DNA of 64,000 nucleotides. Origin: Saccharolobus islandicus REY15A (lineage in GTDB: Archaea; Thermoproteota; Thermoprotei_A; Sulfolobales; Sulfolobaceae). The translations under genes and the position numbers were made by a program. The stretch lies in assembly GCF_000189555.1 (NCBI RefSeq), contig NC_017276.1. One strand, written 5' to 3'. Below, piece after piece: positions 1 through 12,112 of the stretch (within the stretch, counting starts at the first letter, position 1; the number at the start of each line of letters is the position of its first letter). The notes beneath the pieces are model-generated. The model was not told the origin of the DNA. It saw only the letters and a program-made list of their open reading frames with translations, and searched no databases.

Positions 1-723
1 GTAGGCCCAACTGGTAGCGGAAAGACCACTGCATTAAACTCACTATTAATGCTACTTAATCCATTAGCGAAATATTTAACGATTGAGGATACACCGGAGC
101 TAAAATTACCTCACAAATATTGGATACAATTCTATACTAGACCTTCAAACTATGAAGGGAGTAAGGATATCAGTTATTATGAACTAGTCAGACTCTCCTT
201 AAGATATAGACCAGATTACATTATAGTAGGGGAAGTAAGAGGGAAAGAAATAGAATGGCTAGTTCAAGCTGTTGCCAGTGGTCATGGTGGGCTCACAACA
301 TTTCATGGGTCTAATCACGTTGACTTAATAACTAGAATTAGTGGGTTATTGGGTCAAGATCTATCGTTACAATTTAAACAGCTAATTTCAGTGATTGCAA
401 TCATAAAGAGAATTGAAACCGAGAATAGAAAGATGAATAGGAAAATAATATCTATTGTTGAAAATGATGGAAACGGATTTAGGGAAGTATTTAAATATGA
501 TTATGAAAGGAAGAGCTTCCTTCCCAATAATTCAAAAGAAATTGGTAGCATACAGCTGGAAAAAGCTAGAGAATTATTAGGCTGGAGTAAGGATAAGTTG
601 TATAAGGAGATAGAAAATAGGCTATTATTAATAAGGGGGCTTGCTGAAAGGGGAGTTTACGACTACGACGCATTGGCAAAAGAGTTAGTTAAATATTATA
701 TAAATGGTGATAGGGGTGACTGA
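1..723 (+). CDS. Type II/IV secretion (VirB11/TadA-like) pilus-assembly ATPase, 5'-truncated by the window edge; possibly the BasE (bindosome assembly) orthologue
   Basis: Frame open from base 1 reads VGPTGSGKTT (Walker A), then LTIEDTPEL (Asp box) and YIIVGEVRG (Walker B), plus a GHGGLTTFH His box; overlaps the downstream TadC-like gene. Confidence 0.9.
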   Translation, partial: VGPTGSGKTTALNSLLMLLNPLAKYLTIEDTPELKLPHKYWIQFYTRPSNYEGSKDISYYELVRLSLRYRPDYIIVGEVRGKEIEWLVQAVASGHGGLTTFHGSNHVDLITRISGLLGQDLSLQFKQLISVIAIIKRIETENRKMNRKIISIVENDGNGFREVFKYDYERKSFLPNNSKEIGSIQLEKARELLGWSKDKLYKEIENRLLLIRGLAERGVYDYDALAKELVKYYINGDRGD

Positions 724-2692
724 AAGAAGAATTAAATTGGCTAGCATAATCTCATATGATTTCTTGTTTCTAGTTTTACTATCGGGTTTACTAGATTTAA
801 TCATTACGTTATTTAGAGAACGAATTCTATACGTAATTTCTAGTTTCTTTCAATATATAGTAATCAACCCTTCAGTAGCTCTTGGAGACGCATTAGGTTT
901 TCTATTTGTCCTTCAAGCATCGCTTTTAGGTCTATTTATTGGTGGTATAGTTATTTTAAGTATAAGTTTTACAATAAATTTAACGCGGATAAGGAGTGAA
1001 TATGAAGAGGGTGTTCCTTTATCAACTATTCTGAAGTCTAGGATAATTACAAGCAGTAGATTAGGTTTCATAGCAAATTGGATAAGCGAGCGTACTAAGA
1101 GGTATATTAACGCAAGTGCTGACTTAGAAAGTCCTACTGAAGTCGGTGTTAGATACGTCGCATATTTTTTGATCTCATTACTTCTCGTAATACCGATATC
1201 ACTAGCACTAAGTATAATATTACTGTCTCCACTACCATTTCTATTATTACTTTTTCCGTTCATTTTTGTCTTTTATCCAGAACAGAAATACAAAAGTAGG
1301 GCTAGGGAAGTAAGAGACAGCATCCAAGATGAGATCCCTTTCTTTGTGACCTTAATTACTATCATTAACGCCAGCGGTACGACTATATATGAGGGAATGA
1401 GAAAAATTGTGCAGTTTCCATTATTTAAAGCTATGAAAAAGGAAGCATTGCTCATTATAAGAGATATAGATTTCTTCGGAAAATCTCCACTTGACGCTTT
1501 AGAGCATAGAGCTCGATTAACGTTTAATAGAGATTACTCTTGGTTTTTGGCAGGTTATACTTCGATTATAAGGAGTGGTGGCGATATTGAAGCATACCTT
1601 TTTCAAAAGGCTAGAGAATTTCTTAATTGGCTCCAGTTTCGTTGGAGGTTTTACTCAGAAAGAACCTCATTCCTAGGAGAATTAATAGTAATCCTATTCC
1701 TCATTTTCCCCATGTTCTTAATTGTATTAGCGTTCTTCACAAATGGTGCAGTTATATCGTTCTTGCTTGTAATACCAATATTATTTGGTACAATATTATA
1801 CACAATTACAGCTAGCAATAGACCTAGATATATGGATAATATAGGTCTTAACAAGATAAAGCTGTTAATGGCCTTTCTTGCTGCACTTCTAATAGCGGGA
1901 ACAGTTGAAATATTTCTTAATGAAATATATTACGCAATTGGTTTAGGACTATTGGTGTTCTCTATAACCTCAACAATATTCATGTACAACCAAATAAGAG
2001 AAATTAATGACGTAGAGAACTCACTACCGCAATTTCTGAGAGATATTACAGAGTTCAGAAAGATAGGTTACGATCTAAGTAGGGCTATTAAAACATTGGC
2101 TGGGGAAAAGAAATATAGAAGGGAGTTTAATAGGGTTCTAGACGAGATAGTAAAACAAGATTCCATGGGGATTCCAATAACTAGAGCTAAAATAAACACT
2201 AGAAGCTGGTTAGGCAAGTTCTCTCTTACCACTGTTCAGATATTGATAGAGGGCGGTGCAGTAAGACCAGATCTATTAGAATATCTAACTGAATTTACAC
2301 TTAACTTTATACAATCCAAGAGAGAAGCATTCTCAAGGATGAGAGCCTATCAAGTTTTAGGAATTCTGACACCTATCCTCTTAATTGCCACTATACTTAT
2401 AGCGATTGTAATCATTAGCTCATTCACAGTAGTAACTTTACCGGCAAGCACCTTGGGTGTACCTCAATTCCCAAACATAATTGCCCAATTTATTTTATCT
2501 TCGTTTATCCTAGCTGAAATGTTCATATTCATTTTAATGTCGACCTTCGCCATAGGATTACTGATAGCTAAAGCACTATATGGTACTGTACAATACATGA
2601 TAATGCCGTTAATTGGGTTAGTCCTCGCATTACTCTCAATACACTTCTTTAGCGTATTAGAACCAATAATCTTGAGATTCTTCTCGATATAA
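704..2692 (+). CDS. TadC/GspF-family pilus platform membrane protein with two T2SSF domains; possibly BasF
   Basis: 662 aa polytopic protein with two repeats of the 'E(I/L)P.F...' T2SSF motif (DEIPFFV, NSLPQFL); directly follows the secretion ATPase. Confidence 0.85.
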   Translation: MVIGVTERRIKLASIISYDFLFLVLLSGLLDLIITLFRERILYVISSFFQYIVINPSVALGDALGFLFVLQASLLGLFIGGIVILSISFTINLTRIRSEYEEGVPLSTILKSRIITSSRLGFIANWISERTKRYINASADLESPTEVGVRYVAYFLISLLLVIPISLALSIILLSPLPFLLLLFPFIFVFYPEQKYKSRAREVRDSIQDEIPFFVTLITIINASGTTIYEGMRKIVQFPLFKAMKKEALLIIRDIDFFGKSPLDALEHRARLTFNRDYSWFLAGYTSIIRSGGDIEAYLFQKAREFLNWLQFRWRFYSERTSFLGELIVILFLIFPMFLIVLAFFTNGAVISFLLVIPILFGTILYTITASNRPRYMDNIGLNKIKLLMAFLAALLIAGTVEIFLNEIYYAIGLGLLVFSITSTIFMYNQIREINDVENSLPQFLRDITEFRKIGYDLSRAIKTLAGEKKYRREFNRVLDEIVKQDSMGIPITRAKINTRSWLGKFSLTTVQILIEGGAVRPDLLEYLTEFTLNFIQSKREAFSRMRAYQVLGILTPILLIATILIAIVIISSFTVVTLPASTLGVPQFPNIIAQFILSSFILAEMFIFILMSTFAIGLLIAKALYGTVQYMIMPLIGLVLALLSIHFFSVLEPIILRFFSI

Positions 2693-2725
2693 ACGTTTAT
2701 ATTTTCTCTTTCCGTAATTTTATTA

Positions 2726-4246
2726 ATGCAAGATAGTTTAGGATTACTTGCAATAACTCTAGCGGTTATACTACTATTTTCCATTTTAGCTGGTGTAATA
2801 ATATTAAACCATGATGATATTACCCAATTCTATAATGTTCAAGGTAATATAAATACCGAAAAGCTAAGTAAGGCTAAAGTAGGTTATTATTGGGTTGTAG
2901 AAGAGTTAAAAAACATAACAATTTCCTTCATACCTCATGTATATATACTAGATACTGAGGGGATATACAATATTCAAAGCATTTTAGAAACCACATTTAA
3001 CGGACAGACTTACACATTCCCAGTCAAAAACTTGATGATCTTTACCAATGGTTCATTAACTAGATATGGAGTAGTTTTGAGTCCGGGAGATGCAATAGTA
3101 ATTGGACCAAATATCACTAGTGGGCAAATAAGTTTTGTAAGCAATACGGGAAACTCTTTCTCATTAACCCTATTTCCACCCTCAGTTAAAACGCTTTTAC
3201 CAAATGAATATAACCAGAATTATACCGTCGTTACCATAGGAAATGAGAGTGTACTATCCATAAAGACAATAAATGAGAAGTTAATAGGGCTTAAAAACAT
3301 TACGAGTGATGAATTAATCTTTGACTCAACACCTCCGTTATACAATGAAACGTTCCCTCCAGTAAAATCTCCAATACCATATGATTCTTACAAGGTTGAT
3401 ATTACTTATTTTGAAAATGTAACCCCAGTAAAGGTTATTGATGCCAAGAATAATGAAACATATCTCATTTACTTAGGTTATGGCTACTGGATTGGTGAGG
3501 TCTATGGAAATATAGATGAAGGATCTGTACATATTGGGTCTTTCAATATCTCCTACAATACTACATACTTCTATTATACTTATGGTTCAGTAAACTTCCT
3601 TAGTAATTACAAAATTAATATCCACGAAGTCAGTAACGGATATGTCCCACTATGCATGATATTATACACTTACAATGTTACCAATCAAAGTTCTGGATAT
3701 AGTAGAATAGGAAACTATAGTCAATTATGGATTAAGCCGAAAGCAAACGTTAATATAGCTTATACTGGCACTAGTAATATTTACTACTACTATTACGATT
3801 TTATGATAAACTACGCTAATAATAATAGTTTAAACTCCATCCTTATCGGAGGTTCTACTACATACTTAGGCTATTTGCCAATAAACATAACAATAAACGT
3901 CATGGATAACCACAATTTAAACAATACAATCTCCTCTTTTAGGATAGCCTACAACAATTCACAACAATTAACTAGCTTGCCAACAATTATGAACGTTACA
4001 TACAACGTTACCTCATATTCCCCTCCATTTGTACTCAATTTTTCCTTGACTAATGTATCCCTTTCAATAATGTTTAATGGTACGGCTAACTTACCAAACT
4101 ATACCTTCTATAGTTACAATCTACCTATTGTAATTCCAACAAACGAAAGTATATTGAATATTAATGGCTATACTTCGCCAATGATCATTCCATTCTTTAT
4201 TATCATAGTTAATGGGAAAATAGTCGGAGAAAATTTACCTACTTAA
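2726..4246 (+). CDS. Membrane-anchored or secreted Y/N/T-rich surface protein, possible pilus-associated adhesin
   Basis: 506 aa; N-terminal hydrophobic helix, many N-x-S/T sequons, beta-rich composition; 33 bp after the TadC-like gene. Confidence 0.7.
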   Translation: MQDSLGLLAITLAVILLFSILAGVIILNHDDITQFYNVQGNINTEKLSKAKVGYYWVVEELKNITISFIPHVYILDTEGIYNIQSILETTFNGQTYTFPVKNLMIFTNGSLTRYGVVLSPGDAIVIGPNITSGQISFVSNTGNSFSLTLFPPSVKTLLPNEYNQNYTVVTIGNESVLSIKTINEKLIGLKNITSDELIFDSTPPLYNETFPPVKSPIPYDSYKVDITYFENVTPVKVIDAKNNETYLIYLGYGYWIGEVYGNIDEGSVHIGSFNISYNTTYFYYTYGSVNFLSNYKINIHEVSNGYVPLCMILYTYNVTNQSSGYSRIGNYSQLWIKPKANVNIAYTGTSNIYYYYYDFMINYANNNSLNSILIGGSTTYLGYLPINITINVMDNHNLNNTISSFRIAYNNSQQLTSLPTIMNVTYNVTSYSPPFVLNFSLTNVSLSIMFNGTANLPNYTFYSYNLPIVIPTNESILNINGYTSPMIIPFFIIIVNGKIVGENLPT

Positions 4247-4990
4247 TAAATTTATATAGTATAGGATCATTGAGGTAATTATTGCTACATCATAAGCTAT
4301 AGTATTAAAAAAGAGAATTAAGATACATACCGCTAGGACGGAGTAGACATATCTCCAAAGATCCTTTGAAATCATGATACCAAATGCCGAAAAGCCCAGT
4401 GAGAATATGAGAGCTGAATAAAACCAATCTTGGTAATCAGATGCAGTTGGTGGAAAAGCAGCTACTCCAATTAATGGGAAAACCTCTCTATACGTTAACC
4501 CCCTTAAATAATGCAATAAATATAAAGCCAGCATCTCAGCCATCATGGGATAGAAAAACCAGTAGCTATTTATCGAGTAGTAGAAGGCATAGTATAGTGT
4601 TGAAAACTTAGATGGACCAAACTGAGCAATACCGAAAGTAGATCCCATTAATATTTCATTCAATACTAATAGAAGTGAGAAAATGGCAATATGGATTCTT
4701 TCTCTATTAAACTTTGTATTTGAGAATTTGCTTATATTTAATAAAAAATAAATAATTAGGGGTATCATTGTGAAAGTGTTTATACCAAATGCTATTGCCA
4801 ACGATAAGGTTGATGGAGAGATTAAATAAACTGATGCCCCAATGAACATAGTTATCATCATTACGAGGGAAAAGTAAATGAAGAAGACTCCAACGTAAGT
4901 TCTTATCTTCTCTGTATAGTAAAGGATTAAGACTATGATAATAACCATAATCGAAGCTATGAACGATAAAACTATTAGTTCATCTGACAC
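4235..4990 (-). CDS. Hypothetical polytopic membrane protein
   Basis: 251 aa ORF with several hydrophobic segments; GTG start; upstream TTTTTATT TATA-like box on the minus strand. Confidence 0.75.
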   Translation of the reverse strand: MSDELIVLSFIASIMVIIIVLILYYTEKIRTYVGVFFIYFSLVMMITMFIGASVYLISPSTLSLAIAFGINTFTMIPLIIYFLLNISKFSNTKFNRERIHIAIFSLLLVLNEILMGSTFGIAQFGPSKFSTLYYAFYYSINSYWFFYPMMAEMLALYLLHYLRGLTYREVFPLIGVAAFPPTASDYQDWFYSALIFSLGFSAFGIMISKDLWRYVYSVLAVCILILFFNTIAYDVAIITSMILYYINLLSR

Positions 4991-5025
4991 ATGCGACTTA
5001 TTTTATATTAAAAATAAAAAATTAT

Positions 5026-5033
5026 GTGCAACT
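5026..5033. repeat. Left copy of 8-bp target-site duplication GTGCAACT
   Basis: Identical octamer at 11673-11680; each copy abuts an inverted 9-bp terminus. Confidence 0.85.
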
Positions 5034-5042
5034 GAGTGTGGA

Positions 5043-5811
5043 GATAGTGTCGTCGTTAAGCTATTTATATTTGTATAACGAGTATTACTTATGGGTAGGA
5101 AGGCTGTAGTTAGGCAAGACGTTTCTTGTCCCTCTTGTGGTAGTCATCATGTTGTTAAGTGTGGTTGGGTAGGCAGTGTGTAGGGATTGCGGTAGATACT
5201 TCTTGGGTGATGCTACTTACCATCATCATTCCAAGAAGTTGAGGGAGGAGGCTTTGAGGTTGTATGCTAATGGTATGAGTATGAGAGCCATTTCTAGGGT
5301 TTTGAATGTCCCCTTGGGTACTGTGTTCACTTGGATTAAGCGGTATGGTGGGCAGAAGTTGAGTTGTGGGGTAAGGCTAAGGAGCTGGTCAAGGGTGGTG
5401 TTGTTGCTAAGGTTGTTGATGAGATGTGGACTTACTTGTACAAGAATACTAGGGCTTTTTACAACTGGGTTTTCACTTGCTACGTTTACACGAAGCTGGG
5501 AGTTTATCTCATTTACTCTGTGGGGGATAGGGATGAGAGTACTTTCCTTGAGGTCAAAAAGTATTTGCTTGACGAGGGTAGATGGGTGAGCGATGATTAT
5601 AACTTGTACTTCTGGTTGAAAGACCACACGGTTGTCTCGCCAGTTAACCCGAACGAGTCCTTTCATTCCTCATTAAGGGATAGGCTAATTAGATTCAAGA
5701 GAGCAACGAAGGCAGTAAATAGGAGCATTAGTACCATGATGTACTCCATAGCCCTAGTCTTATGGGAGAGAAGGTTAATCCCAGAATTTGTAGCTTAATG
5801 ACGACACTATG
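5043..5811 (+). mobile_element. IS1-family element (ISC796-like), degenerate
   Basis: ~21-bp inverted repeats GATAGTGTCGTCGTTAAGCTA (5043-5063) and TAGCTTAATGACGACACTATG (5791-5811) enclosing a transposase reading frame. Confidence 0.85.
5091..5798 (+). pseudogene. IS1-family transposase, frameshifted
   Basis: ATG 5091 MGRKAVVRQDVSCPSCGSHH (Zn ribbon) stops early; CRDC and the HTH continue in a second frame; the DDE domain (VDEMW, SDDY, NESFHSSLR) is in a third frame. Confidence 0.85.
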
Positions 5812-5868
5812 GACACACTCCATGTTCACTAAGCTAACTTTTTAACGAGAATTAGGTAATGTTAAGTT

Positions 5869-6171
5869 ATGATAAGTTTCACACAAATTAACGGATACCC
5901 GATAATGATTTATGAAAAGGACGGTAAGAAATATTATTAGTTGGCTGGATGTCCTCATAAGAAAAGACCTTTAAATGAAGGAAAGGTATTTGACGATAAG
6001 ATAATGTGCCCCTTCCATAAGGCTGTATTTAGCCTAATTACTGGAGAATTAATTAAAGAACCAGAATCTAAAACTCCTTGTATTAATTGCAGATTAATAA
6101 AGGCAGATATAATAGGAGATAAAATAGTTTTTGAAGAAGAACCATTCATACCACAATTACCATCAAAATAA
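5869..6171 (+). pseudogene. Small Rieske [2Fe-2S] ferredoxin interrupted by an in-frame TAG (5938-5940)
   Basis: ATG 5869 MISFTQINGYPIMIYEKDGKKYY*LAGCPH...IMCPFH...F; both Rieske motifs (CxH, CxxH) lie downstream of the stop. Confidence 0.7.
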
Positions 6172-6381
6172 CTTTTTAACTCTAACTAATATAATCTTAG
6201 CTGTATTACTAATTACTTTTTAACTTAAATATATTAATAATTTTCATTAAATTCTAATCATCTATAAGTAAATTATATTTTATCATTACATAAATAGCAC
6301 TGTATTAAAAATTAATATAATATTAATAAATTGTTTAAATTTCTAATGTAATTTAAGTTTATCACTAGCCTTTATGAGAAT

Positions 6382-7023
6382 TCATTTATATATTGTTGGA
6401 TCCCTTATTTTAGCTTGTTTAAAAGCCTCAATCCTCTTTAAGCATTGACTACATTTACCACAGTGATATTTATGACCTAACAAGCACGAATAAGTAATGG
6501 ATGGATCTAATCCGCTTTTTATACCTATTTTTAGAAGTAGATATTTAGGAAAATTAACAAAAGGAGTTTCAAATCTAACACCTAATATCTCACCTAATTC
6601 CTTAAGCTTTTCCATTATATCCCTTCTATTGGGCTCGTACTCACAGTCCTCCTTTATCGTAGCCATGATAACTCTTTCGTAACCATTTTGCTTAGCGTAA
6701 GCAATAGCTATGGGAACTATTACTAAATTCCTATGAATTATGGGTTCATGTGGTCTTAACCAATCATTATTTACAAAAGCCTCACCAAGGTTTTTAGCAT
6801 TAATAATTATCAGCCTTCTTTTTAACTTCTCACATATAATTTTACCATATTTCAGCTGCATCCTAGCTGAGGATTGTCCGTAATTTATGAAAAGACAGTC
6901 GAAATCCAGACCTTTTTTAGCATAATAATATGCAACTGAAGATGAGTCCAAACCAGATGAGAAAAGTAATAAAAATTTCATAATATCTATTTCCAGTAAT
7001 TTCTTAGCCTTATTTATCTTCAT
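6382..7023 (-). CDS. queC: Stand-alone QueC-like (7-cyano-7-deazaguanine synthase family) PP-loop ATPase
   Basis: SSGLDS PP-loop, INYGQ, HRNLVI, and C-terminal SC...CGKCSQC Zn site; alternative start at 6981. Confidence 0.8.
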   Translation of the reverse strand: MKINKAKKLLEIDIMKFLLLFSSGLDSSSVAYYYAKKGLDFDCLFINYGQSSARMQLKYGKIICEKLKRRLIIINAKNLGEAFVNNDWLRPHEPIIHRNLVIVPIAIAYAKQNGYERVIMATIKEDCEYEPNRRDIMEKLKELGEILGVRFETPFVNFPKYLLLKIGIKSGLDPSITYSCLLGHKYHCGKCSQCLKRIEAFKQAKIRDPTIYK

Positions 7024-7108
7024 TACTAATTGAAATGCTTCAACTAGAGGCTATTAAATATGTACAAGGTTATAAAGAGCTTAAATTAAGTCTAATAACT
7101 TTACGGAA

Positions 7109-7270
7109 ATGCTAACGAATATAAGTGTAATAATTGATGGAGAGGTTTTAGGAATATATGTATCAAAAGAATACCTCGTAATAAGTAAGGAGAGGATGAG
7201 AAGATACAAGAACAATAAGAAGGGCTAGAAGAAATACTTAAACTAAAGCCTTGCGTATTAGTATTTTATA
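7109..7270 (+). pseudogene. IS110-family transposase N-terminal fragment (ISC1190-like, from recall)
   Basis: Reads EVLGIYVSKEYLVISKERMRRYKNNKKG, then after a frameshift EEILKLKPC; matches my recollection of Sulfolobus IS110 N-termini with the catalytic GID mutated to GIY. Confidence 0.5.
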
Positions 7271-7741
7271 AAAATATTAATATTTATACAAATTAAGTAA
7301 GTGAGCCTATAAAAGCATAATCAGTTATACTACGGATAAATTCCCTAAATAATTTATAGCTTAATATTAACGTTTTTATATATATAAAAGCAAAATTAGA
7401 GTTAAAATAATTTATTCAACTAATTAAGAAAGTATGGCTTACCTTTTACCTTTGTGTCGTATTTATAAATAAATTATATTATAAATATTAATTGAAAATT
7501 GAAATTAGAATCTAGCTAACTTAATGAAGGCATAATAACTGCATATGATCTAATAAAATAAACATGCTTCGTGGAATTATTTAATTTTTCTCAATAGAAA
7601 TGTATAACTAACTTATAATCCAGATTAGCTTAGAATTTATTCCAATTCATCTAGCTTAAGAACTAAGAAAGGTAAACTAATTCATAAATTAAAATAAACA
7701 AAAACTTAAATTCTTTAAATTCTCTTCTAGATATCTTCAAA

Positions 7742-9157
7742 TTATAATGTATAATTTATATAATAATAGTAAAATGGTATATAGTATTTCTCTCCACCAA
7801 TACAATAAGGTACACTAGCGTTCATCAAATATATGTAATAAGTATACGAGGAAAGATCAGTTATCGAGATTGTCGATGCAAAGTAAGAATAAGAATTTGT
7901 AAATGCAACAATCCCCACATAAGGTGAGACTACTGCCAAAAGTGATGACAACCATGAAGGAATACTCTCACTCAACGATTCAGCAATCTTAATAATTAAG
8001 CCAATAGGAACACTATAAGTACCGTAACCATTAGAAGTATAAATCGAAACTGAAGTATATGAATTAGTAAGTGTAGTAGGATTCACACTAAATAGGAATG
8101 TTAAGTTCTTTGAGAAATACTCACTAGGGGGAACGTTAGGAATTGTTGTATTATATAATGCTGGTAAATAACTTGATCCAGAACTAACAACTTCTAACCC
8201 AGTTAAAAATGCCTCATCACAATAACCGTAAAATTGTGGGGGAGCACGAGGTGTAGATAAACAATAGAAATACACACTATAATTTGCAACAGCAATCTGA
8301 CCCATAGTATAAATTTCCAAAAAATTAGTATTTGTACTTTTACCATAATTTCCTTTTTCACATATTACTAGATTACTAGCGCTTGTGGTTATTGAGAAGC
8401 CTGAAATGGTTACTGGGTATCCTAGTACTAAAACTCCGAATTTGAATTGTATTCCAGATGCTTGTGAATGGCCTTCCTTAAGTAATAAACTACCTACGTA
8501 ATCTTTGTAGTTTGTATCAGTTACGTAGGTTATTGATAGTGGTATTATTCCTAGGCTTTTGTTTGATGGGTAGAACCACACTTTGTTTAGGTAGAATATT
8601 AGGTTTCCTTTTGCTTGTTCTTGAGGTACTGTTGTTGTAGTAGTGGGGTCTTTTCTTTTTATTATAATTTTCCTTGGTTTAATGAATAGTTTTGCTACTG
8701 TTTTTCCTATCCCGTGTGTTATGTTGTATTGTGAGATTGTTATTGTGAATGGTTGTATGTATGCTATTGTCTCGTTTTGCTCGTTTATTGTATATGATGC
8801 GAATCCTAGTAGTGATGGGGAGATATTATAGCCATAGTGCTTTATCCAATGCTTTACTATTGTGGTTAAGCTGCTCAAGGGTATTTTCACGTAGCTAGTA
8901 TCATTTGCAACTAGTATTCTCCTAATTACGGTACCATTTGCTGTTGGGTAAAATGCGAAAATGCTTACGGAAACGTTTTGTAATAATGTTAATTTGTTGG
9001 GGGAGTATTTGAAGAATACCACATTTATATCCTTAGGATTAGTATACTTAACGTAGAGCATGTAGAAAGTATTGTAATTGTTGATTATAATTGTTAATAT
9101 TATGATGATAATTAATATCAAAGCAGAAACCATAACAATTTTAGTTCTCCTACTCAT
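7742..9157 (-). CDS. Membrane-anchored extracellular protein of unknown function
   Basis: 471 aa; basic N-terminus plus Ile-rich TM, Thr linker (DPTTTTTVP), Y/S/T-rich body with sequons. Confidence 0.75.
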   Translation of the reverse strand: MSRRTKIVMVSALILIIIIILTIIINNYNTFYMLYVKYTNPKDINVVFFKYSPNKLTLLQNVSVSIFAFYPTANGTVIRRILVANDTSYVKIPLSSLTTIVKHWIKHYGYNISPSLLGFASYTINEQNETIAYIQPFTITISQYNITHGIGKTVAKLFIKPRKIIIKRKDPTTTTTVPQEQAKGNLIFYLNKVWFYPSNKSLGIIPLSITYVTDTNYKDYVGSLLLKEGHSQASGIQFKFGVLVLGYPVTISGFSITTSASNLVICEKGNYGKSTNTNFLEIYTMGQIAVANYSVYFYCLSTPRAPPQFYGYCDEAFLTGLEVVSSGSSYLPALYNTTIPNVPPSEYFSKNLTFLFSVNPTTLTNSYTSVSIYTSNGYGTYSVPIGLIIKIAESLSESIPSWLSSLLAVVSPYVGIVAFTNSYSYFASTISITDLSSYTYYIYLMNASVPYCIGGEKYYIPFYYYYINYTL

Positions 9158-9304
9158 TTTCTCTAAACGATTAGTTAAAAGGATAACTATTAAACTTTTC
9201 TAGTAAATAACTAGAATGTAAATAAGGATATATATTTTATTGAAAATTTAATTTATCTTCTCTACGATTATAACTATTCCGTAAGCTATTATCTCGCCCA
9301 TACT

Positions 9305-9514
9305 GAGTGTGAACAACGATTTCGTTCATTTGAAATTTGGTTAAAATTTCCTTAAAGTCGTATCATTTAAACTCTCTGATTTACAATAAAACTCTTGAAC
9401 ATGGTTAAAATTACAAAATTATATTTTATTAACTAACAAATCTTGTGGTGAATTGAAAATAAATTTATACTTTATACAATTTATACTGAATTAACAAAAT
9501 TGTTATCCACATTC
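9305..9514. mobile_element. 210-bp MITE-like non-autonomous element with IS6-type ends
   Basis: Left 31 bp match the IS6 end at 10829 at 25/31 positions; right 24 bp match the IS6 end at 11649-11672 at 22/24; interior is AT-rich and non-coding. Confidence 0.7.
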
Positions 9515-9705
9515 CCTTTGGAAGAGATAAATTTTTAATAAAAGATCTAAAAATAATCATTTCATATAATATATAGATAAATTATGAGTAAACACTTAAA
9601 GAACAAGTCAAAAGCAGCTTATTCTTACTAGTAATATTTTATGTTTAGTATTATCAAGTATAGAAGAAAGGTTAAGGAAAAAAGCTATAATCAGGAGTAA
9701 AATCC

Positions 9706-10077
9706 TTAACTATTAACGGCAAATATAACTAGTTTCTTAACATCTTCCTTAAGTTTTTTAACTTCCTTCTCGTTTAAACTAAGCTCATGGAATCCTTCCA
9801 CATGAAGAGTCCATGCGCTTTTCCATAGAATTGGTATTTCAGGATTATTACTTCGTAATAATTTGGAAGCTTTAAACAAGTTTTCGCTTTCCCATCTTCC
9901 CTTGCTCTCAACATCATTTATTATTTCTTTTAGGTTATTTTCTATAACAAGAAGCTTTATAGCCTCCTCAGCAGCCTTATAGTACTTCTCACAAGCCTGA
10001 ACAAGATCACCCTTAGATAAAAACTCCTCCGCATCATTTAAGAACTTTAATGCTAAATCTTTGCTTGGCCTCCTCAA
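9706..10077 (-). CDS. PaREP1-family protein (copy 2)
   Basis: AEEFLSKGDLVQACEKYYKAAEEAIK signature, plus W..A..LH..GFHE. Confidence 0.85.
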   Translation of the reverse strand: MRRPSKDLALKFLNDAEEFLSKGDLVQACEKYYKAAEEAIKLLVIENNLKEIINDVESKGRWESENLFKASKLLRSNNPEIPILWKSAWTLHVEGFHELSLNEKEVKKLKEDVKKLVIFAVNS

Positions 10078-10372
10078 TTAGCGTCTTAATGTCTTTCTTA
10101 TAATTCTCTATTAAATCTTTATCCATAAATTTTCTTGCAGTAAAAAGTGTTACCGCTGATGCCCACATGTCTATTATATTATCTCCAAGCTTATAAGACA
10201 GTTCAGTTACCGCATCATTTAATGTCTTAGAATCCCACCCGTGCTCTTCTGCCTCATTTATTATTTCTTTTAGGTTATTTTCTATAACAAGAAGCTTTAT
10301 AGCCTCCTCAGCAGCCTTATAGTACTTCTCACAAGCCTGAACAAGATCACCCTTAGATAAAAACTCCTCCGC
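9914..10372. repeat. 119-bp identical direct repeat (9914-10032 and 10254-10372) shared by the two PaREP1 genes
   Basis: Base-by-base identity by eye; 340-bp offset. Confidence 0.9.
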
Positions 10373-10411
10373 TTCCTCGTAATATATCTCTGCACTAGTA
10401 CTTATACTCAT
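10034..10411 (-). CDS. PaREP1-family protein (copy 1)
   Basis: Same signature; probable start MSISTSAEIYYEEAEEFL at 10411 (the longer tracked ORF runs into the tnpA remnant). Confidence 0.85.
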   Translation of the reverse strand: MSISTSAEIYYEEAEEFLSKGDLVQACEKYYKAAEEAIKLLVIENNLKEIINEAEEHGWDSKTLNDAVTELSYKLGDNIIDMWASAVTLFTARKFMDKDLIENYKKDIKTLIEEAKQRFSIKVLK

Positions 10412-10454
10412 TACAATAAACATTATAAAACACACTTTTAACTCTTTCTGATAA

Positions 10455-10783
10455 AGAATGACAAGCCTCACCCGGACGAGGTTTGTGTATTTTCTTAACT
10501 CTGGGAATTTCTTCAAGACTAGTCTGGCTCATTTTCCCTTGAAGTAGTTTGCTAGATATGATGGTGAGTATCTGGGTGGGCAGTTTACGAAGAGGTGTAT
10601 GTGGACTGGCATTACTTCTAGGGTTATTATTTCACAATCTAATTCTTCTGAAATTGATTTCAAGATCTCTTTAATATATTCGGCCACTTCACCGACTAAC
10701 ATGTCTCTACGATGTTTTGGAATCCATACAAAATGATAGTTATATAGGTATTTCGCATGCCTTGTTGATTTGTATTCTACAAT
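10455..10783 (-). pseudogene. tnpA: IS200/IS605-family Y1 transposase (tnpA) remnant with subterminal hairpin
   Basis: VEYKSTRHAKYLYNYHFVWIPKHR...PVHIHLFV...YFKGK* (HUH motif; TGA at 10529-10531); the catalytic-Tyr region is missing; hairpin ACAAGCCTC-N8-GAGGTTTGT at 10461-10486. Confidence 0.8.
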
Positions 10784-10828
10784 ACTTTAAAGTATTCAGA
10801 GATTTAAAAGCTTAAGGAAAACTCTGGA

Positions 10829-11672
10829 GAGTATGGCCAACATTTTCATTCATTTGAAACATTTACATTTATTATCACCTCCTTATCTAACAAGTACGTT
10901 GGGGTGTAAAGGATGTTGTATATCAAGAAGAATGTTGATAACCACCTCACTATTGTTAACTTGTTGGAATTCCAAGGAAAGTGGAAGTCCATTGATGCAA
11001 GCCTATGTTTTAAACTTCTGAACCCTTGTTCTGCATAATCCCTCTCGTTGAATATTACCTTCTCATGTTCTACGTTTAGCCATGAGAAGGCGTTGTAAGC
11101 TGTTGCTTCATCGTGCAAGTAAATTACCTTATCCATCCTTACTTTGAATACTCTCCTTGCTATCTCTTCAGCCCTCTTCATACTTACTAGGACCACCAAG
11201 ACGTGTACTCCACTCCTAACGCTGGTAATCATGAAGAAAGGTATTCCCTTGGTTTTGACATCCCTAACAATCCACACGTAATAATACTGACCCTTGATTA
11301 GCCTTACCTTAGCCTCGTCAATCGCGTAAACCCCGCTCAATGGTACAGCGTACTTAACATAACTCAACCTCCTATGGTAGTAAAGCAGAGTGGGGCAAAA
11401 CGACCCTCCATGAGGATAATCCAGAAACGTAGTTAGCCAAGGCAGAGGCTACGGTCTCCCTAGAGTAAAACCTCGGGCTAAGGTTAATATACTCCATTAA
11501 TATTAGTATTACTTGGGTGAGCACGGGAACCTTCCATCTAGTTCCCGTAATCTCACCCTAAATAATACCTCCCGTGCTAACCCTAAAAAGGTATTATCAT
11601 CAACGTTCTATTAATAAAGCACAAACAATTCAAATAATTCATTTTAGATTAACAAAATTGTTGTCCACACTC
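10829..11672 (-). mobile_element. IS6-family insertion sequence, 844 bp, inactivated
   Basis: Imperfect terminal IRs GAGTATGGCCAACATTTT and GAGTGTGGACAACAATTTT (reverse complement of the right end) enclose a DDE transposase. Confidence 0.8.
10846..11548 (-). pseudogene. IS6-family DDE transposase, frameshifted, apparent start codon mutated to ACG
   Basis: AIDE...LHDE...AEQGFRSLK triad in 10846-11367; the N-terminal part (RWKVPVLTQV...LPHS) is in another frame. Confidence 0.75.
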
Positions 11673-11680
11673 GTGCAACT
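11673..11680. repeat. Right copy of 8-bp target-site duplication GTGCAACT
   Basis: Identical to 5026-5033. Confidence 0.85.
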
Positions 11681-11683
11681 TAC

Positions 11684-11699
11684 GGAAAACCTTTTATAC
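11684..11699 (+). promoter_or_regulatory. BRE/TATA (GGAAAA-CC-TTTTATAC) for the gene at 11720
   Basis: Canonical spacing about 25 bp upstream of the ATG, consistent with a leaderless transcript. Confidence 0.6.
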
Positions 11700-11719
11700 A
11701 ATGTTCCTTCATTTATAGT

Positions 11720-12112
11720 ATGAATCCTTTTAAAAAAGAAAAAACATATCCTAAACAAGTTGATTTAAATAAGGTAGTTAATGAGTTTGTATCTTACCTA
11801 AATAGCGATAAATGGAAAGTACAACAAAAAGTAGAGGGAAATAAGGCAATAGTTCAAGCACAGAAAGGTGGAATATTAAGAGATATAATCGCTGCAGATA
11901 GAGCTTTAACGTTTACTTTTGAGAATACACCTCAAGGTCTTAAGGTAACTGCAGGAGTAGGCAGTTGGATAAAGAATTTGGCAATAACTGCGGTAGAAAC
12001 ACTTTTACTATCTGAATTATTCCTAATAGTTGACGTACCAGAAATGTTATGGAACAAACATGTTGAATCAGAGCTTATGAAAAAACTAGATGAAATAGTA
12101 CAAAGATCATAA
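11720..12112 (+). CDS. Conserved hypothetical protein
   Basis: 130 aa ORF with a promoter; converges on the aminopeptidase. Confidence 0.75.
   Translation: MNPFKKEKTYPKQVDLNKVVNEFVSYLNSDKWKVQQKVEGNKAIVQAQKGGILRDIIAADRALTFTFENTPQGLKVTAGVGSWIKNLAITAVETLLLSELFLIVDVPEMLWNKHVESELMKKLDEIVQRS

Follow-up and report, generated by a model that had tools for sequence, protein, structure and literature searches.

A 6.6-kb block of foreign genes in Saccharolobus islandicus REY15A: most likely two mobile elements, nested and then trimmed

How did a 6.6-kb block of genes with matching 9-bp termini come to stand between two chromosomal genes of Saccharolobus islandicus REY15A, and which element carried it there? 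The strain, together with its derivative E233S, is the principal system for genetics in the Sulfolobales, and the block represents an insertion, particular to a strain lineage, of foreign genes, several of which have decayed. We analysed the 64-kb window of REY15A that contains it; all coordinates are those of this window, whose base 1 corresponds approximately to base 2,356,001 of CP002425 (features in Table 1). The first-pass annotation of the window had described the block as a single cargo transposon moved by ends of the IS6 type (IS, insertion sequence). Comparison with relatives confirms the insertion, but the locus most likely represents two mobile elements, one nested in the other and then trimmed, which is ordinary mobile-DNA biology and not a single new cargo transposon. 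Current understanding of transposition is not overturned; the point of note is the apparent targeting of the tips of one IS family by the ends of another. A single comparison yields an unoccupied site, an intermediate, a shortened derivative and the likely donor sequence, which makes the locus unusually complete for an archaeon.

An insertion with an 8-bp target-site duplication

The octamer GTGCAACT flanks the block on both sides. On the left it runs into the 9-mer GAGTGTGGA (together 5026-5042), and on the right it follows the reverse complement of that 9-mer, TCCACACTC (11664-11672; together 11664-11680), both strings being found as the first-pass annotation had given them. The 9-mer occurs at these two places only within the window (0.22 expected). 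The octamer occurs three times (0.94 expected); two copies directly adjoin the 9-mers and the third lies far off.

Empty alleles of the site were found in eight contigs: S. islandicus M.16.4 (CP001402, L031), six Logan contigs (L032-L036, L081) and one JGI metagenome contig (L080). M.16.4 and five of the Logan contigs were reached via a 96%-identical variant of the 130-amino-acid (aa) right-flank protein, and the JGI contig and one further Logan contig via another variant. The 251-aa and 130-aa flanking genes are 82 bp apart in 8/8 of these contigs, and the spacer is collinear on both sides with that of REY15A, where its two parts (4991-5033, 43 bp, and 11681-11719, 39 bp) still lie beside the flanking genes; the 82-bp length given for the intergenic region on removal of the block is correct. 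The empty allele carries one octamer, ATGCGACT, exactly where REY15A carries GTGCAACT twice. With a single octamer at the predicted breakpoints, both the insertion and its 8-bp target duplication are genuine, and the evidence for them is direct. Alignment to relatives had been proposed as the check on this point; no relative carried the cargo here without the duplicated octamer, and no empty allele had breakpoints away from 5034 and 11672. At two positions both REY15A copies of GTGCAACT depart in the same way from the M.16.4 octamer, which fits the duplication of a single local allele. The same two differences account for the empty result of an exact search for the rejoined site in contigs representing one genome per species.

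That there was no insertion, the repeats being chance matches or the short M.16.4 allele a deletion, has a negligible probability. AT-rich DNA often holds short repeats, and the octamer by itself is not significant in the window. However, exactly one octamer stands at the predicted junction in eight independent contigs, the inserted DNA terminates in transposon tips, and the cargo is 96% identical to the chromosome of another species. Two further searches were less informative: an aminopeptidase search of the one-genome-per-species contigs gave no close relative, and exact look-ups of the REY15A flanking proteins and QueC returned REY15A-derived assemblies only, with contigs ending at IS ends. 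The 82-bp spacer of the empty allele contains two copies of the motif ATGCGACTTA, one at the start of the spacer and one at the insertion target (window 4991-5000; L031 9919-9965).

Two insertion sequences and an older form of the locus

The right end of the block is an ISC774-type element, filed under IS6 and referred to as such below. It matches NF033588 (transpos_ISC774) at 215.8 bits (cut-off 200) over profile positions 52-195, and a separate N-terminal piece (positions 1-44) lies in another frame. Its ends in REY15A read GAGTATGGCCAACATTTTC and GAGTGTGGACAACAATTTTG, with inverted repeats beginning GAGTATGGCCAAC and GAGTGTGGACAAC; in a contig of another strain with an uninterrupted copy at this site (L023, SRR23610156) both tips are GAGTGTGGACAAC. 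The earlier identification of both 9-bp termini of the block as ISC774/IS6-type tips stands. ISFinder lists 8-bp duplications for the Sulfolobus IS6-type elements ISSis1 and ISSte1 and gives 'nd' for ISC774 (PMC6807381). Look-ups of IS6 transposases and a viral-contig search for IS6 transposase found no independent copy.

The left end is more than the 9 bp that the first-pass annotation took to be all that remained: a complete, decayed IS1-family element with its own inverted repeats (IS1a) starts directly after the 9-mer. Two fragments of its open reading frames (ORFs) match NCBIfam NF033558 (IS1) over profile positions 24-82 and 100-198, neither of them reaching the cut-off for the whole protein, and a fragment shares 97% identity with a 244-aa protein to which NCBI gives the name IS1 family transposase. 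Pfam recognises the catalytic core of neither IS, and the assignments rest on NCBIfam and on named homologues; a related IS1 copy in Saccharolobus caldissimus gives a weak Zn_ribbon_InsA match, below the Pfam cut-off. The IS1a transposase is not intact, being spread over three frames with gaps totalling 14 and 13 nucleotides (nt) relative to the copy in L039 (AHJO01000001).

The limits of this element matter for what follows. Its core inverted repeats read GATAGTGTCGTCGTTAAGC and CATAGTGTCGTCATTAAGC. Across 22 metagenome contigs with this IS1, conservation begins at (G/C)ATAGTG, which is window position 5043, and in L040 the GATAGTG...CACTATC of a 777-bp copy is immediately bordered on both sides by TTCGGCGT, a perfect 8-bp duplication; a copy in L072 is flanked by an 8-bp duplication matching at 7/8 positions. 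The L040 ends and the 22-contig conservation together place the IS1a core at 5043-5811 and indicate that IS1 elements of this type make 8-bp duplications. With the core starting at 5043, the 9 bp at 5034-5042 lie outside it. Repeat analysis had returned 30-nt inverted repeats at 5034-5063 and 5791-5820; we rejected these as the IS1 ends, since independent copies place the core 9 bp further in. The 9-mer GACACACTC just beyond the right end of IS1a is either the tip of a donor IS6-type element or an extended IS1 end. In L039 (236-2247) the IS1 is split by a DDE_Tnp_2-type element just past the start codon, between its left end and the remaining coding region, another case of a nested IS.

The site is also filled in LAL14/1 (CP003928) and in CP046616. 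LAL14/1 reads, in order, GTGCAACT, GAGTGTGGA, IS1a, GACACACTC, 6.35 kb of cargo, GAGTGTGTC, an inverted second copy IS1b, AGTGTGGA-CAAC...IS6...TCCACACTC and GTGCAACT, 8,768 bp in total. IS1a and IS1b are inverted with respect to each other and identical at 770/772 positions. The IS6 there lacks the first G of its inner tip, which directly abuts the end of the IS1b core; when IS1a, cargo, IS1b and one AGTGTGGA are taken out, an intact IS6 between GTGCAACT copies is left, and the joined flanks equal the uninterrupted IS6 end of L023 base for base. LAL14/1 has features expected of a composite transposon, namely two IS copies, a flanking duplication (AGTGTGGA on both sides) and a known uninterrupted target (L023), whereas REY15A has IS1a alone. 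REY15A is 99% identical to LAL14/1 until 10828 and then passes straight into IS6. By this comparison the 8.8-kb LAL14/1 form is evidently the older one and REY15A a deletion derivative of it. The 6.6-kb block as annotated is accordingly not the unit that arrived: LAL14/1 keeps the older form with its second, inverted IS1, and REY15A was trimmed from it. The locus is absent from the atypical regions described in the LAL14/1 genome paper (PMC3718332).

The REY15A IS6 records the trimming. Its inner ~570 bp are ~10% diverged from the LAL14/1 copy and its outer ~270 bp nearly identical, and a 5-bp deletion at the switch point frameshifts its transposase, which in LAL14/1 is an intact 202-aa ORF. 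On this alignment it is evidently a mosaic, the inner part derived from a diverged copy and the outer part from the resident one. IS1a also differs between the strains: REY15A (5043-5811) and LAL14/1 (L022 1195-1966) show 41 differences, at least the first 40 of them within the first ~480 bp. Lying amid cargo that is 99% identical, they suggest gene conversion from another IS1 copy.

The cargo itself is foreign, as first proposed. All of the cargo as found in LAL14/1 is also present in S. caldissimus (AP025226), with 96% nucleotide identity and in another chromosomal context. The 471-aa cargo protein shares 95% identity with an S. caldissimus protein; for the 130-aa core protein of the flank the figure is 82%. 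There is no IS1 at the S. caldissimus borders, and similarity ends exactly at the two 9-mers. The 9-mers next to the right ends of IS1 did not belong to the native cargo. One border removes the first 15 codons of an ATP-cone gene, which is intact in S. caldissimus and fused to IS1b sequence in LAL14/1. The likely source of the cargo is an S. caldissimus-like chromosome; the segment taken appears to have been set by the IS1 copies.

Order of events and comparison with known systems

With moderate confidence, we favour a history in which IS6 came first, an IS1 composite entered its tip second and trimming in REY15A followed. In the first step, an ISC774-type IS6 of ~849 bp would have entered the 82-bp spacer of an Icelandic S. 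islandicus ancestor, duplicating GTGCAACT. In the second, a 7.9-kb composite, made of inverted IS1a and IS1b around 6.35 kb from an S. caldissimus-like chromosome, would have entered 1 bp inside the inner IS6 tip, duplicating AGTGTGGA and stranding 9 bp of the IS6 repeat at the far left. In the third, in the REY15A lineage, a second, diverged IS6 would have inserted behind ...CTCTGGA of the cargo; recombination between it and the resident IS6 would have taken out 1.3 kb of cargo together with IS1b and the inner portion of the older IS6 and so produced the mosaic. Read as G-AGTGTGGA-{IS1a...IS1b}-AGTGTGGA-CAAC, the nested arrangement accounts for every base of the LAL14/1 form of the locus. Direct evidence exists for the LAL14/1 intermediate, for the AGTGTGGA as well as the GTGCAACT duplication, and for the mosaic; the order of the first two steps and the transposase acting in each are what we infer. 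Because the IS1 twins bracket the cargo and the unit sits in the IS6 tip with its own AGTGTGGA duplication, the simplest account is transport of the genes by IS1 ends rather than IS6 ends, with GTGCAACT arising from an ordinary insertion of IS6. The copies of GTGCAACT flank the outer IS6 tip and the stranded 9-bp tip, and count as an IS6 target duplication only if the elements are nested. If this history is right, it implies recent gene flow, on an IS1 composite, from an S. caldissimus-like lineage into Icelandic S. islandicus.

The first-pass proposal that queC, the Rieske gene, the surface protein and the PaREP1 pair arrived as one unit on IS6-type ends keeps its foreign cargo and its true insertion; the IS1 twins that bracket the cargo in LAL14/1 speak against the rest, and we retain one-step arrival as a rival. 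On this view a unit with the 9-bp IS6-type tip at its left and the full IS6 at its right moved in one piece and generated GTGCAACT. Its left tip could derive from a gutted IS6-type element or from an IS6 that the IS1 composite had split elsewhere beforehand, with IS1 nesting before or after the move. Both outermost 9-mers are indeed IS6-type tips, and the 8-bp duplication is of the length recorded for Sulfolobus IS6-type elements (PMC6807381). In CP046616 the IS1 beside IS6 shows a perfect G-AGTGTGGA and AGTGTGGA-CAAC with the cargo end directly outside, as if IS6 once abutted cargo. The 2-nt mismatch at the IS1b duplication, GAGTGTGTC against AGTGTGGA, in LAL14/1 and CP046616 counts against it. 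It would also require a transposase to use an end with 9 bp of repeat followed by unrelated IS1 sequence, and more events, including the gutting of the left IS6. Bacterial compound structures of the IS26 type do not move as units (PMC6807381). Within S. islandicus, exact look-ups placed the cargo at this one locus, and no second copy of the whole unit was found. We regard one-step arrival as doubtful, though a serious contender.

Several observations weigh against the nested history. The intermediate it predicts, an intact IS6 alone between two GTGCAACT copies, was in no genome found, and L023, which has an intact IS6 at the site, has different DNA at its inner flank. Since IS1 seems always to enter IS6-type tips at one position, two separate tips, and not one event, could have supplied the identical AGTGTGGA copies. 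We therefore rejected the two matching copies as sole proof of a single event, because with tip targeting two events would look alike. Nor does the nested history account for the 9-mers next to the right ends of IS1: at the same cargo border REY15A and LAL14/1 carry GACACACTC and CP046616 carries TCCACACTC. Some metagenomic IS1 copies lie between two tip-like 9-mers with duplication-like 8-mers outside, matching at 7/8 (L044) or 6/8 (L058) positions. The L044 type hints that units bounded by tips alone can move, which is also a point for one-step arrival. Finally, the nested history rests on sequence comparison; no transposition was seen directly. As for the 9-mers next to the IS1 right ends, they could have belonged as tips to IS6-type elements formerly beside the cargo, blurred by gene conversion between the IS1 twins, or they could mark units moving on tips alone.

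Copies of the L044 and L058 kind, which the REY15A IS1a resembles, also lend something to another rival, in which an IS1 composite with extra tip-like 9-mers entered GTGCAACT directly and IS6 later inserted between the IS1b core and its 9-mer. We consider this very improbable. The observed junction, CACTATC running into AGTGTGGACAAC, cannot result from it; a normal IS6 insertion leaves extra 8-mer copies on both sides, so that two further 9-bp deletions would be needed; and the left 9-mer is the IS6 tip GAGTGTGGA, unlike the GAGTGTGTC found beside IS1 right ends.

The two other arrangements of the site have features of their own. In CP046616 (L021 380-400, 7440-8660) the cargo lies between IS1 copies, in the orientation opposite to that in REY15A. 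The IS1 beside IS6 contains an element of 1,216 bp whose ends are of the CCTATATAGG type, and the second IS1 copy has its break at the same point within the element. In L023 (1043-2652) the IS6 at this site has an intact inner tip and an AAA_14/DUF4143 ATPase gene as its inner neighbour, with no IS1b there; a further rearrangement is likely, probably between IS6 copies.

Returning to the nested history, entry of IS1 into an IS6-type tip is seen directly elsewhere. In S. caldissimus a different IS1, 78% identical, interrupts the cargo's miniature inverted-repeat transposable element (MITE) with an 8-bp duplication, as GTTG-TCCACACT-[GATAGTG...CACTATC]-TTCACACT-C, where the same MITE tip is uninterrupted in S. 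islandicus. Entry follows the first G of GAGTGTGRA, just as it does in the IS6 of LAL14/1. In L039 a third IS1 end abuts AATTTGGATAAC, a tip without its first G. Two clean cases (LAL14/1 and S. caldissimus) and one probable case (L039) suggest that IS1-type ends target IS6-type tips. Two pattern scans of viral contigs for IS1/tip junctions gave chance matches in GC-rich DNA or nothing, and the literature searched gives no description of such targeting for these archaeal elements. More speculatively, Sulfolobales IS1 may home to a fixed position in the repeats of ISC774-type elements and MITEs, disabling or gutting them, while units bounded by 9-bp tips stay mobile; we think this improbable, but if it were true a single step could have mobilised the REY15A block as a transposon with hybrid ends. 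An IS family that targets the ends of another would shape the build-up and death of mobile elements in these genomes.

IS1 composites such as Tn9 and Tn1681 consist of two IS1 copies around passenger genes, with the outer ends acting together and producing an 8-9 bp duplication. The LAL14/1 form, with its nearly identical inverted twins (770/772) and AGTGTGGA on both sides, resembles these enterobacterial transposons in a textbook comparison. It differs in its archaeal host and in a transposase only distantly related to that of E. coli IS1. Its passengers are ordinary chromosomal genes of another Saccharolobus species with no resistance or toxin genes, its target is the tip of another insertion sequence, and REY15A keeps one decayed IS1. 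With the pseudo-compound transposons of IS26/IS6 the locus shares an 8-bp duplication, an IS6-type border element and an IS-adjacent deletion by recombination between IS copies. However, IS26 structures consist of direct full copies and do not move as a unit (PMC6807381), whereas here the left side has 9 bp of IS6 type and then IS1 directly, with no second full IS6 copy, so filing the block as such a pseudo-compound structure fails for want of full copies at both ends. The same authors argue that archaeal elements including ISC774 may not belong to the IS26/IS6 family at all and that there are no experimental data on them (PMC6807381).

Nesting in general is familiar: one insertion sequence interrupts and disables the end of another, and each layer keeps its duplication. 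What sets this locus apart is that the same base of the IS6-type tip has been struck by IS1-type ends in at least two independent cases, a pattern suggestive of sequence-specific targeting between families.

Cargo contents and neighbouring genes

The genes of the block are listed in Table 1. The Rieske gene is one of the decayed ones: LAL14/1 has TGG where REY15A has the stop codon, and with it a full 100-aa ORF. PADLOC gave a generic QueC match only and no defence system. The MITE has ends that both match IS6 ends and is flanked by CCCATACT and CCTTTGGA, with no flanking duplication visible. The LAL14/1 genome paper reports over-represented IS1 transposases and, as MITE classes, SMN1 and SM3A only (PMC3718332), and the class found here may be unrecorded for S. 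islandicus in that paper.

Table 1. Features of the insertion and its flanks in the REY15A window
Feature	Position	Strand	Basis
Left flanking gene, 251-aa membrane protein, no family match	4235-4990	-	ORF list; left neighbour in empty allele
Left copy of the 8-bp target-site duplication GTGCAACT	5026-5033	.	Single octamer here in empty allele
9-bp tip GAGTGTGGA, best interpreted as the initial 9 bp of the inner inverted repeat of IS6, severed from the remainder of that element	5034-5042	+	Same as uninterrupted IS6 tip in L023 (GAGTGTGGACAAC)
Left copy of the second duplication AGTGTGGA	5035-5042		LAL14/1 right copy of AGTGTGGA after IS1b, running into CAAC of IS6
IS1a, IS1-family insertion sequence, 769-bp core GATAGTG...CACTATG, transposase broken into three frames	5043-5811	+	NCBIfam, inverted repeats, L040 comparison
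9-mer GACACACTC just outside the IS1a right end	5812-5820	.	Absent from S. caldissimus at this border; reads TCCACACTC in CP046616
Cargo	5821-10828	.	Pfam; 99% identical to LAL14/1; 96% to S. caldissimus AP025226
Rieske gene with in-frame stop, TAG at 5938-5940	5869-6171		Pfam, frame analysis
QueC-like gene	6382-7023	-	Pfam
471-aa protein without family match	7742-9157	-	
ISC774-type MITE, 210 bp, ends resembling both IS6 ends	9305-9514	.	Repeats D2 and D7
PaREP1 genes, two	9706-10077 and 10034-10516	-	Pfam
IS200-type TnpA fragment	10529-10702	-	
ISC774-type 'IS6-family' element, 844 bp, mosaic, transposase frameshifted	10829-11672	-	NCBIfam, alignment, frame analysis
Right copy of the 8-bp target-site duplication GTGCAACT	11673-11680	.	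Comparison with empty allele
Right flanking gene, 130-aa conserved protein of Sulfolobales	11720-12112	+	ORF list; empty-allele contigs

The 471-aa protein has no Pfam, NCBIfam or PADLOC match. Among 5.8 billion proteins it has 15 relatives, scattered over S. caldissimus, Sulfurisphaera tokodaii and Acidianus, and the S. tokodaii relative sits among sugar-use genes. The two PaREP1 genes have a 122-nt stretch in common at 99% identity (9914-10035 and 10254-10375); in S. caldissimus the upstream one is fused with the IS200-type TnpA fragment in one 222-aa ORF. Beyond the left flank, LAL14/1 (L077/L078) lacks most of a neighbouring cluster that is present in REY15A (window ~1-4246) and M.16.4 (L014 10745-17111). 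The missing genes encode a 506-aa protein, T2SSF-like and T2SSE-like proteins and three proteins of ~130 aa, and a 114-aa remnant stands alone beside the 251-aa gene.

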